From: Saccostrea cucullata
Lineage: Eukaryota
Direction: 5' to 3'
NCBI RefSeq assembly: GCF_032062105.1
Contig: NW_026931985.1
Span: 310,001 to 374,000, forward strand
DNA: 64,000 nucleotides
Below the pieces are notes generated by a model that saw only the letters and a program-made list of their open reading frames with translations, searched no databases and was not told the DNA's origin. The translations under genes were made by a program, and so were the position numbers. Of this stretch, positions 42,487 through 49,700 are shown piece by piece (the stretch's first letter is position 1; each line of letters opens with the position of its first letter).

Positions 42487-44757
42487 ATGGCTCAACATGA
42501 CGAGGATCGCGAAATGGAGTTGATTTTGACAGCGTTGGGATTCGAAGAGCCTGTTTCTAAAATGAAACAAGCTGAGGTTCTTGCATCCGAGAGAATTAAA
42601 AACGCCACGTTGGTTCCCAAATTCTCAACAGTGTACACTGGAAGTTCAGCGGAAGGGTTTAGTGGCGACTATGTGTTGAAAACATCCAAAGCCGATTTCG
42701 ACATTACAATTTCTTTCGATCGAATACTATATATAGTAGACCAAGGGGAGGATGTAAAAGACTTGGATACCAAAATTCCTTTTATTGTTCAGATTTGTCA
42801 TGAGAATGTGCCACCGGGTTACACGAAATTGGAGGCAATGATTGACGAAAAACTGGCTCTAACATCGAAATTGGTTGTGAAAGTTGAAAATCGCCTATTC
42901 TTATCGAGTTCGAAAGCTCTGTCCACTCTTGGGCCATCACATCGAAAAATTGTAGGAGAAATTGAGGACAAAAATGAAAAATATGTGTCATTTGAAAGAC
43001 ACGGCCCAGCAAGTACTGTAGTGTTTAACTGTTCAAATGTTGGCTTTGCAAAAAGAGATTTAGTTTGTGGATTCCCTTGTCGATTCTGGCCAAAATATGC
43101 TCAGAACTGGACAACGAGAAAAAGAATATGGCCTACCAAAGAACTCGTAATTATAATAACGAACGAAGGTTGCCATTTAGTCCCCACTGGATTTCCGGGG
43201 AGCGAGTCAGAACATATCGAATGGCGATACTCTTTTGTAAAATCAGAACGAAGGCTGATGTGGCTGCTTAATGATTGTCAACGCAAATGCTTCGCGTTAT
43301 TGAAATTTCTTAATAAAGAAATGGTAGCTAAATATTTTGAAAAAGAGACTCTGACGTCATATCATCTGAAGACTACCATGTTATGGGTTCTTGAAGAAAC
43401 GAAACCAACGGATTGGTCAACAGAAAACATCTTGCAATGTGTACAATTTTGCTTTACAAAATTATTGAAGTTTGTGAACAACAGACATTGTCCACATTAT
43501 TTTATGGAAAGTCTTAATTTATTGGATAGAGAGGTCTTTACAGAGGATACGTGTCAAAAGTTAAGTGACGTCATAACATCGATTCTAGGTGACCCCCTCT
43601 CAGCTTTACAAAAGTGTCCCACCATTCACCGACTTCATACTTGCTTGGACTCTTTAGATCTGGAATATCTTCATCGTTGTCACATGAGCTTCCAATGGTT
43701 CATGTGTTGTTCTAGACAATTTGACGAGCTGGTTTCTATGTCGGGGGTGAAATTCTGGAGAACAGTGTTGGGACATTACAACGTCAACAAATCAATGGGT
43801 TTCAACATGAGCCTCATGGAATACCTACAGGTTATGAATGATGATCCTTTTCAGAGTTTGTATGCTAGACCATTTGTAAGACTGAACCATTCTCTTATAG
43901 GAATCCTTCATCATACAGAAATATCCAAAATGACCCCAGTGGACGAGGAAGACTTTGAAATTCAAAATCTGTATGTAGAGGATGCAAGAGATAATTTTGT
44001 TAAAGGCTTTCAAGGTCATTCCATCACCCCAAAACTCAGGCTTGCGATTTTTGAGTTGATGATGAAAGAGCTAGATCGTGCCGATGAGATTTTAAAACAA
44101 ATTGATCATGAAAATGCTGTTTTTCTAGACAAAGAAATTAAAGCGAAAATGTCAGCGTTGGAGGAAGAATTCTTAGTCTTCATTTCTGATGAACTGGAAA
44201 AACGATCATTAAAGCCAGTCGAAATTGAAAGGCGGAAAAAGTTCGTAGAATGTACGTACAGGATTTTGCAAGGGATATTTGAAAGCAAAGATGTAGATCA
44301 TATGGAATATCTGCTCGAACTAGACCACAAATTCATAGAATTTCGACCGCTATCTTGGTTGTCAGCAGACGTCATATTTTTGCCGGAAGAAATCAGCTGT
44401 GTTCCTTTCCCTTTTCAGGTAGAACTGGCAGCTATCAAAGCTTATTCTTTACCCTGTGATGGCATCAAATACCATCCAAAAACTCTGACTCTTGCTCTCA
44501 AGTGTTTGGTCAGCGTTGCGCAAAACGACAGAGAGTCTGCAAAGTTCTTTTGCCGCCAAATTTTGACTTCTCTAGAAAGTATCGGGGAGGAATATGATCG
44601 TGTTCTTATCTTGAACTTAGTAGGTGGCTTGTTGCTTAAACTGAATGATTTTAATGATGCATGGGAAACAGTTATTAAGGCAGTTAGATTATCTAGGTCA
44701 AACATGTCTTCTTTTTGGTTACTTGGTTTACTTTTATCCAAGAAATTTCGTGATTGA
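42487..44757 (+). CDS. Mab-21-domain nucleotidyltransferase, cGAS-like receptor (cGLR), 756 aa, intronless CDS with a helical/TPR-like C-terminal extension
   Basis: TGSSAEG (G52-S53), D70-F-D72, RD191LV..FPC..WP, GCHLVPTG, EWRYSFVKSERRL, SYHLKTTMLW and CPHYFM are Mab-21/cGLR signatures. Confidence 0.93.
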   Translation: MAQHDEDREMELILTALGFEEPVSKMKQAEVLASERIKNATLVPKFSTVYTGSSAEGFSGDYVLKTSKADFDITISFDRILYIVDQGEDVKDLDTKIPFIVQICHENVPPGYTKLEAMIDEKLALTSKLVVKVENRLFLSSSKALSTLGPSHRKIVGEIEDKNEKYVSFERHGPASTVVFNCSNVGFAKRDLVCGFPCRFWPKYAQNWTTRKRIWPTKELVIIITNEGCHLVPTGFPGSESEHIEWRYSFVKSERRLMWLLNDCQRKCFALLKFLNKEMVAKYFEKETLTSYHLKTTMLWVLEETKPTDWSTENILQCVQFCFTKLLKFVNNRHCPHYFMESLNLLDREVFTEDTCQKLSDVITSILGDPLSALQKCPTIHRLHTCLDSLDLEYLHRCHMSFQWFMCCSRQFDELVSMSGVKFWRTVLGHYNVNKSMGFNMSLMEYLQVMNDDPFQSLYARPFVRLNHSLIGILHHTEISKMTPVDEEDFEIQNLYVEDARDNFVKGFQGHSITPKLRLAIFELMMKELDRADEILKQIDHENAVFLDKEIKAKMSALEEEFLVFISDELEKRSLKPVEIERRKKFVECTYRILQGIFESKDVDHMEYLLELDHKFIEFRPLSWLSADVIFLPEEISCVPFPFQVELAAIKAYSLPCDGIKYHPKTLTLALKCLVSVAQNDRESAKFFCRQILTSLESIGEEYDRVLILNLVGGLLLKLNDFNDAWETVIKAVRLSRSNMSSFWLLGLLLSKKFRD

Positions 44758-46799: not shown

Positions 46800-49700
46800 A
46801 TGGGTACCAACAACATGTTGGCATTTGCCCTTTTCTCTGTTTTTTCACTGACATCAGGGCTATATTTTCATATCGGCGAAACTGAAAAGAAATGTTTCAT
46901 TGAGGAAATCCCAGATGAAACTATGGTTGTCGGTACGTTTTACATTTTTACTGAAAAATAATGCTCAATTCGGTATAAAATATGGTCATCTCTTGGTTAT
47001 TTTCAGATTGATTTGAAAGTATGGTATAATTTCTCGCCGGTTTAGTTTGCATTTGATAAACCATTGCAATACACATCTTGTTAAGCTAATACATTGCGTG
47101 AAATTCTCTTGATGAACACGATCAGGATATATTTTGTAACAGATCTTCTAGTATATCTTTGTAGGCAGGCAGGGATACATTTGTAGGAGGTATTATATTT
47201 TGAGTATAAGAGGCCTCTATAAGGATGATACAAAGCATCTGCTTCACAGTTATAGATTCTAGTCTGAAAAAAATATATTAAAATTCAGTGAAATGTGTTT
47301 ATATTTTGCAAAATTAAACCTACTTCACCTTTTTTTCAACATTTTGCTGTGTGTTACAGGCCATTACAAAGTAGAAATGTTTGACAGAAATGTCAATGAT
47401 TATGTACCAACTGTCTACGGACTTGGTATGCACGTGGAAGTTACAGACCCAGAAGATAAAACTGTCATGTCACGGGTAAGGTCAAGTGCAGAAACAAACT
47501 TAAACACAGCAAGGGCAACACGAATGCATGTTATCACATTTTAGCACATGGCAACATTTATTTCAAAATCAGATTTAAGCGCAAATTTAACAACTAATCA
47601 GTAATCATGAACATTTTATTGTCTCTATAATCATGGAAAAGATGAATTTAGGAAAAGCAGATCCGTCTGTGTCATTGAAAATTTTACCAAATATTTTACA
47701 ATTTGTGTTGATAAACTTGTATTGAGTTTGATCTGAAATCTTGCCATGTCTAAGCAGCAAATTTTTCAAAACTGCTGACATATAATGGCACTTTAATAGC
47801 ATTATTATGAAACTTTCTGAAAATCATATTAGAAAAAAGTTTTTAAAATGGAAAGGATGCTAAACTGCCATTATAAAAATCATTAATGTCTCCTGCTTTC
47901 TTCATTTTTTTAGAAAAAGCGGTTTGCAGTGATTTGCAGCAGAATAAAGTTGTCAAACCAGACTAGTTGCATGCATTGTTTTTAAAAAAGAGAAATGATT
48001 ATTCAATTTAATTGGCCCCTTTTTTCCAGGCGCATACAAAGTGCAGGCCTATGACTATTCTATTAAGGACTATTTGCCCTCTGCCCCAGGGGTGGGGATG
48101 TTGGTTGAGGTCAAGGACCCAGAGGAAAAAGTTATCCTGTCCCGGGTGAGTGTCAGCAGTTAGAGAAGGCGGCTTAGTTTCTCTGACCAGTACTTTCCAC
48201 CTTAAGATGACATGTGCTTTAGCTGAAGTGAATTACCACGGCAAAATTCACATCTAAATCCCACATAATCTGACTTCTACATTTACTGGACACTGGATTA
48301 TATCTCTAGAGTGGTTTTTTAGCACAGTTTTTAACAAAAAATTAATGAATATATTAACTCTTGTGTATATCTTTTGAATTATTATTTTTTTACTGCTTTT
48401 CACCTCATGTAAATGGTTGAATCACAAGATTGACATTTCAATCAATGCACTATTTCTAGTAACTAACTAGATGTTAGTTTATGCAAATGAGTCTTTCAAT
48501 AGCTGTCAGAAAAAAAGTCATACTCTTATACAATATTTATATTTTTTGCAAAACTGTGTAAATAAAGTGAAATAACATATTAAGTTAGCAATATCTTTGT
48601 CAATATTACATCAATTTTTGAGTTCAATAATTAGACAATAAAAAGCGGCAAACTTGGTTGTAGATTTTATAGACATTTATTGTAGATATATTTTTCTGTT
48701 CCTTTTCTTGTCTTGATAGAATGGTACAAACTTGGGAGCTGGTGCTGCATTTTAAAAAACTCCAATGATTTACTTTATTTTTCCCCCACAATTTTGTTCC
48801 TTTTTTACAGACTTCTATCACAAACTCTCTGGGGAGGAAAAACCCTTTTCAGCATACTTCATAGGAAACTGCGGCAGTTTGTTTTGCATGATAATGTTTT
48901 TTTCTTATATATATTTTGTTTACATGCATGCTTTTTTAATATATGTGCAGATTGGTAAATCATTACGATACATACATTAGAAATGATAAAGTATTAAGTT
49001 TGTCTATTTTATCATTTTATTATGCAGAAAATGATAACCATTCTCTTCCATGTAAATAATCTGAATTTTATAATAATTTTCATTTACCAATTAACTGTTA
49101 CGCATTTAAAAGATTTAAAAGATTCTTTGTTGATTCACATATGAAAATTTCTGTTAAGATGTAAAACTTTTCTGACACAAAATTTAATGAAATTATTTTC
49201 ATTCTTCAGACATATGCAGCAGATGGAAGATTCACTTTCACGTCCCATAATGCTGGGGAACATGTGATCTGTCTTCACTCCAATTCTACAGCTTGGTTTT
49301 CCAGTGGTCAGTTGGTAAGTTGACCATTCGGACATAAATGACCAGTATAAGATATGGTATAATGACAAGGGTCATGAAACTTGAACTGTATTTGATAAAA
49401 GTTTTCTCTGAATTGTTTTTGAAGCATTCCAGCAGTCTAAATATAAAGAGTACCTGAATTTTATTCAATTAAATATCTACCTTCAGTGATAACCAGGACC
49501 TTGTTTTCATTCTTGGTTAAAGCAGCGAAAGAGTTTGTAATGTGCATGTATCTATGGTGAAGCTACCAAATTATTGGGATAGCATAAGAGAGGGCTTTTA
49601 TATAGGAAATGCCTGCAGCCCAGTTCATTTATAATTAGATAAATGTTCAAATCAGCAGAAGAAGATTGAATTTAGATATGCCTCATTCAGAAAATTCATT

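Follow-up and report, generated by a model that had tools for sequence, protein, structure and literature searches.

Two alternative copies of coding exon 2 in a p24-alpha gene of the oyster Saccostrea cucullata

A p24-alpha gene of the oyster Saccostrea cucullata carries two homologous copies of its second coding exon, A and B, and we have little doubt that these are spliced in an either-or pattern. The complete reading, in which this is an ancient either-or exon that yields two isoforms with distinct luminal binding, is likely, with the binding being the inferred part. The pair is real and ancient and is apparently undescribed in papers, and its kind is well known (PMC5740500, PMC9741552, PMC7434440). 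The gene lies in a 64,000-nt stretch of contig NW_026931985.1 (positions 310,001 to 374,000, assembly GCF_032062105.1), hereafter the window, and coordinates without a contig label refer to this window.

The gene and its two second exons

The gene belongs to the p24-alpha subfamily (TMED4/9/11, eclair). Its exons matched PF01105 in a domain search, and the encoded protein combines this domain with two GOLD cysteines, a single transmembrane (TM) helix and a tail with FF and KKxx; its closest solved relative is TMED9. Both A and B matched residues 63-100 of human TMED9 in a PDB search (9CJK, 21GL). RefSeq XP_062572244.1 (S. cucullata, isoform X1) holds exons 1, A, 3, 4 and 5 exactly. The features of the gene are as follows.

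46800..46932, + strand: coding exon 1; signal peptide, GOLD strands beta1 and beta2, start of beta3; ends in phase 1, with RNA joints at 46932; weak PF01105 match
47360..47475, + strand: alternative exon 2A (A), 116 nt; second half of beta3, hairpin, beta4, start of beta5; probably the major form
47476..48029, + strand: intron A-B, 554 nt; UGCAUG at +50 and -62 and two local hairpins, candidate regulatory elements
48030..48145, + strand: alternative exon 2B (B), 116 nt; same structural segment as A; probably the minor form
48068..48145, + strand: 3' part of B, reached via an internal AG (48066-48067); following A, it produces the in-frame 242-aa form of RefSeq
48146..49209, + strand: intron between B and exon 3, 1064 nt; two UGCAUG (-325, -285), kept in Saccostrea echinata
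49210..49314, + strand: coding exon 3; remaining GOLD domain, second cysteine
49738..49884, + strand: coding exon 4; last GOLD strand, linker, coiled coil
50171..50320, + strand: coding exon 5; end of the coiled coil, TM helix, FF and KKxx tail, stop

The 3' untranslated region beyond exon 5 reached ~51270 in the RNA contigs. Searches of the assembly with A, B, exon 4 and exon 5, whose counts are lower bounds, found no second p24-alpha locus, leaving this gene as the only one found. Three intronless 224-aa ORFs of the p24 family are present elsewhere in the genome (G000:C4631, C1774 and C12830); because they are only ~38% identical to exon 5, they belong to another p24 subfamily. Just upstream of the p24-alpha gene, a single 756-aa ORF with Mab-21/cGAS-like domains occupies 42487-44757 (+). 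At 60087-62282 (-), an LTR retrotransposon-like stretch in pieces consists of ORFs that encode zinc knuckle and aspartyl protease domains.

A and B are each 116 nt long, enter in phase 1 and leave in phase 0, follow AG acceptors and have open frames. Their donors are GTAAGG and GTGAGT, respectively, and all donors of the gene are U2-type. The coordinates, lengths, equal phases, splice sites, open frames and peptides given in the initial annotation were all exact, and its estimate that about half of the residues are common to A and B agrees with our count of 19 out of 38 (70 out of 116 nt). By codon position, identity was 24/38 at first, 28/38 at second and 16/38 at third positions. This pattern, with the third position least alike, indicates two old coding copies. 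The introns flanking A showed no similarity to those flanking B, which argues against both a recent duplication and an assembly artefact; there is no N in the region of the gene. These two explanations were ruled out by the unrelated flanks together with near-saturated synonymous sites and the presence of both copies in other genomes.

Transcripts with A only or B only each encode 216 aa. As had been predicted, inclusion of both exons or of neither shifts the frame: the A+B transcript terminates after aa 140, its stop lying 194 nt before the last junction, and the transcript with neither exon stops after aa 57.

To follow splicing in RNA, contigs from public runs were aligned to the gene, of which three runs, without tissue label, were informative (X1, X3 and X6). 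The RNA was ~92-98% alike to the window; its source is a related oyster or strain and another individual. Exon 1 was joined to A in X1 and X6 and to B in X1, while A was joined to exon 3 in all three runs and B to exon 3 in X1 and X3. One contig of X6 covered exons 1, A, 3, 4 and 5, and one of the three runs contained only A. Neither A-to-B nor exon 1-to-exon 3 joints were present in the RNA contigs, which is a weak negative because contigs drop rare variants. Contig depth, a poor measure of expression, was 70-130 for A and 34 for B in X1, and ~2050 and 170 in X3; these depths fit A as probably the main form and B as the minor one. The four RNA variants listed within B were all synonymous. Low-depth contigs from two runs extended from B into the following intron (48116-48458) and represent a retained intron, pre-mRNA or DNA.

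The four joints support the mutually exclusive use of A and B proposed from the sequence. The stricter statement, that productive mRNAs carry exactly one of the two, is not absolute in view of a 242-aa form that RefSeq annotates for S. cucullata, S. echinata, C. virginica, O. edulis and C. angulata, five oysters in all. This form contains all of A followed by the last 26 codons of B, with the frame restored through the AG inside B (47475 joined to 48068, cut at 48067|48068). One database protein (P0271) contains the A of the window and then the 26-aa piece of B, exactly. The AlphaFold model of the 242-aa form was poor (pLDDT 64, with residues 45-72 mostly below 50), and the alignment was shallow for the insert. 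The 47475-to-48068 joint was absent from the RNA contigs, where the B contigs of X1 and X3 ran unbroken across the internal AG. The 242-aa form could be an infrequent by-product, or else an artefact of annotation. If it is real, the donor of A can reach into B, and the products would be kept clean by the reading frame and nonsense-mediated decay (NMD), without a hard lock.

Conservation and age of the pair

Database proteins contained 24 isoform pairs that differ only inside exon 2, from 21 mollusc taxa and from Owenia, Lineus and Tubulanus. The molluscs comprise oysters, scallops, a mussel, clams, a freshwater mussel, abalones, a limpet, several snails, Octopus, Sepia and the chiton Liolophura. 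The check across Mollusca that the initial annotation proposed thus found both copies kept. The order A then B was the same in the genomic loci of S. echinata, two other bivalve-like contigs and Octopus. Among molluscs, mean identity was 0.70 within A, 0.67 within B and 0.52 between A and B. Near-fixed A/B differences occupy positions 5-7, 9, 12, 15 and 17-19, for example E/Q5, F/Y7, N/K12, V/LM15, T/S17, V/A18 and Y/P19.

Substitution rates were determined for each exon, as had also been proposed. Compared with S. echinata, A had a dN of 0 and a dS of 0.31, and B a dN of 0.114 and a dS of 0.306; the resulting dN/dS of B was 0.37, against 0-0.08 for the other exons. Compared with distant bivalves, both exons had a dN of 0.12-0.23 with dS near or at saturation. 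In comparisons of B with B among distant bivalves, dN was far below dS (e.g., 0.12-0.16, with a dS of 1.9 or saturated). By these sequence comparisons, both exons are under purifying selection, with B less constrained. The observation that would have spoken against the pair, one exon never included and free of purifying selection, was not made, as both exons are joined in RNA.

The lower constraint on B raises the question of whether B is a decaying copy in Saccostrea that is still spliced at a low level. The two Saccostrea species differ by seven residues in B and by none in A, a B-only Saccostrea protein was absent among the cluster members examined, and one of the three informative runs had only A. 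Against this, the frame, the length and both splice sites of B are intact, its dN/dS of 0.37 is below 1, and its RNA variants are synonymous. Moreover, the B of the window lies on a short tree branch, most of the change being on the S. echinata side. We consider decay of B very improbable.

Some taxa departed from the simple pair. The venerid clams Mercenaria and Ruditapes (isoform X3; P0251 and P0324) have a second alternative terminal exon 5, encoding the TM helix and tail, with 16 differences in aa 169-213; the oyster window contains no such copy. Two Candidula proteins (P0182 and P0215) differ throughout, one with an A-type and the other with a B-type exon, and are possibly gene duplicates that split the exons. 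In a Mytilus-like contig covered 1x (L029:6110-6210), the 3' end of B and its donor recur in two additional short tandem copies, which are either a real micro-duplication or a long-read error.

Outside the molluscs, two copies of exon 2 were found in Lineus (116 and 110 nt), in Lamellibrachia (116 and 116 nt) and in a contig resembling the bryozoan Watersipora (116 and 119 nt), and three in Owenia (116, 113 and 113 nt; L032:2611-5282). All of these copies have AG/GT ends and a length of 2 modulo 3. The middle copy of Owenia (L032:3290-3402) was absent from the two annotated proteins found. In Macrostomum, a single copy is present and is fused to the exons that follow it; one copy was also found in rotifer-, arthropod- and cnidarian-like contigs. 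The second copies of two nemertean species have a common two-residue deletion.

In a tree of the 38 columns of exon 2, mollusc B was set apart from the rest (96/86) and mollusc A fell together with first copies from other spiralians (98/93); second copies from outside the molluscs had long branches. Topology tests weakly rejected a clade uniting mollusc A with mollusc B (p-AU 0.034) and did not reject one uniting every second copy (0.07), both within the limits set by 38 columns and long branches. The loop motif P-S-x-P, present in cnidarians, arthropods and deuterostomes, is retained in B. The pair is therefore at least as old as the chiton-conchiferan split; mollusc evolution covers over 500 million years. 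A single lophotrochozoan origin, with the second copies orthologous to B, is possible from these sequences.

Two further observations were made in the annelid loci. Lamellibrachia has a tandem duplicate of the 147-nt coiled-coil exon 4 (L034:9115-9261 and 9611-9757), annotated with both copies included (264 aa); as its length is divisible by three, this is possibly another alternative pair. In both Owenia and Lamellibrachia (L032:1-1197 and L034:1-2689), CCDC149 (PF09789) is located head-to-head with the p24-alpha gene.

The exchanged part of the GOLD domain

The GOLD domain of a clam A-type isoform, as modelled by AlphaFold (pLDDT 85), matched p24 GOLD crystal structures. In this model, exon 2 covers strands E22-34 (second half), E39-42, E49-54 and E60-64. 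The encoded segment thus begins midway along the long third strand; a turn and a short strand then fold back onto that strand as a protruding hairpin, and a loop leads on to strand four and the beginning of strand five. Since exon 2 carries core beta-strands, it should not be skippable. Most A/B differences are in the hairpin and loop, and the core pattern is invariant. The differences cluster in the first half of the exon, which bears out the earlier remark that A and B differ most in their N-terminal half.

The only mapped cargo contact of TMED9 is strand beta2 with E52 (PMC11414720). The oyster counterpart of this edge is encoded by the constitutive exon 1, outside the swap; the exchange of A for B therefore leaves the beta2 edge alone and alters a different surface. 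The initial annotation had proposed two receptors with different luminal surfaces. The hairpin and loop do differ between A and B, and the functional part of the proposal is inferred, with the mapped cargo edge outside the swapped segment. GOLD domains also bind Tango1 (PMC10932740) and possibly other p24s (PMC7045115), which would be natural candidate partners of the swapped surface. The same hairpin also distinguishes vertebrate TMED9-type from TMED4 sequences, as does position 24 (H vs F), where mollusc B has L, F or Y in place of H in 12 out of 19 sequences. This difference may be read as a parallel to A and B and is not proof.

We also considered that the two proteins are functionally equivalent, and that the pair is kept to set the amount of p24-alpha, with A+B or intron-retained transcripts going to NMD, or by subfunctionalisation of expression. 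The premature stops of the both and neither forms and the contigs running from B into the next intron are compatible with this explanation, as are the known cargo edge, coiled coil and tail common to both isoforms. If the copies were equivalent, however, separate sets of near-fixed residues would not be expected to persist in them from chiton to cephalopod, and the tree separates mollusc B from A. Functional equivalence is thus improbable.

A broader version of the preferred reading, in which the isoforms differ in luminal binding, treats the beta3-beta4 hairpin as a module that sets specificity, be it for a class of cargo, for Tango1 or for a different p24. Its switching by splicing would predate the divergence of molluscs, annelids, nemerteans and bryozoans, and B would have kept the loop of ancestral type; other lineages would have duplicated the coiled-coil exon or the TM/tail exon, and p24-alpha diversity would arise from exon modules within one gene. 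We put this forward tentatively, as an idea with less than an even chance.

Exon choice and comparison with known systems

Neither a U12 donor nor a donor-branch distance below 50 nt was found at A/B. The U2-type donors and the 554-nt intron A-B rule out a U12 lock and a short-intron steric lock. A branch-like TTAAT is located at -22 of B. The effective donor-branch distance, estimated at ~60-80 nt, exceeds the limit of 50 nt applied in PMC5740500. No snoRNA or other Rfam element scored above threshold in the introns.

Four UGCAUG motifs were found at matching places in both Saccostrea species: after A (+50/+30), before B (-62/-58) and two in the intron between B and exon 3. The background of this motif in the window is 0.375 per kb. 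According to RBFOX position rules, UGCAUG at such places would favour A and repress B. The motif was absent from these places in the Mytilus-like locus, and neither the sites nor the intron hairpins were positionally conserved beyond Saccostrea; no regulatory element common across mollusc classes was found.

Exclusion could also act before NMD, through competing RNA pairings of the docking/selector (Dscam) type or through a structure that places the donor of A too near the branch point of B. Two hairpins of intron A-B (~47541-47755 and 47780-47877) can form in both S. cucullata and S. echinata, with energies of -18.4/-12.1 and -14.5/-17.6 kcal/mol. Compared with shuffled sequences, the A-B intron was more stably folded in four loci (z -1.8 to -3.4; -0.97 for the window in a separate run), and a perfect 20-nt pair around B in the Mytilus-like locus would loop out B. 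Use of the AG 38 nt inside B would suit a blocked normal acceptor. In contrast, the long-range pairings of the window that would hide the acceptor of A or loop out B were rejected as being at chance level (-14.8 vs a null median of -13.5, and -12.9 vs -11.6), and they weaken in S. echinata. Only one compensatory pair in 99 was found in the intron comparison, which had two alignable species, no element is common across classes, and the effective donor-branch distance exceeds the limit. An upstream lock of this kind is hence rather unlikely, with about one chance in four.

In the mechanism that we favour, coding exon 2 of the single p24-alpha gene (TMED4/9/eclair) would have undergone an ancient tandem duplication. 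Transcripts with both copies or neither would be removed by NMD owing to their premature stops, so that the frame, at the least, would guarantee exclusion, and the core beta-strands carried by exon 2 would make it unskippable. The choice would be regulated, with A probably common, possibly through RBFOX-type UGCAUG or the intron hairpins. Because the beta1/beta2 edge, coiled coil, TM helix and COPI tail are common to both isoforms and the hairpin differs, both would most likely enter the same p24 complexes and differ in luminal partner or cargo preference. The vertebrate paralogues TMED4 and TMED9 may differ in the same way.

The pair resembles described cases of tandem duplicated exon substitution, or mutually exclusive exons (PMC9741552, PMC5740500), in having adjacent homologous exons of the same phase, one per mRNA, and also in age, in lengths not divisible by three and in encoding the same structural segment. 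The main texts of these two papers contain no TMED, and the vertebrate-type p24-alpha sequences found here have a single exon with a different 3' boundary. Likewise, coq-2 exons 6a/6e (PMC7434440) and the alternative exons of NALCN (PMC3557258, cited in PMC9741552) are invertebrate-restricted exclusive pairs in molluscs and annelids, like that of p24-alpha, and coq-2 (and mrp-1) pose the same question of single or repeated origin. The coq-2 and NALCN pairs exchange an active site and an ion filter, respectively, with demonstrated function, whereas the oyster pair exchanges a surface hairpin of a cargo receptor, with a proposed function.

Human TMED9 (PDB 9CJK, 21GL), TMED4 and Drosophila eclair and p24-2 (PMC7045115, PMC11414720) have the same signal peptide, GOLD domain, coiled coil, TM helix and FF/KKxx tail as the oyster protein. 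Vertebrates and Drosophila diversify p24-alpha by gene duplication, in contrast to the one gene with two exons of this oyster. A full-text literature search, with most subscription papers outside its reach, found no description of alternative p24-alpha exons. The arrangement is therefore apparently undescribed in papers, as the initial annotation supposed, although both isoforms are already in databases for many molluscs.

What p24 GOLD domains recognise is still argued, with cargo, other p24s and Tango1 all proposed (PMC7045115, PMC10932740, PMC11414720). The natural swap of 38 residues in an otherwise identical protein points to a hairpin outside the known beta2 cargo edge, and the A and B isoforms are ready-made chimeras for probing this recognition. 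The pair also adds a housekeeping trafficking gene to the mutually exclusive exons of invertebrates.
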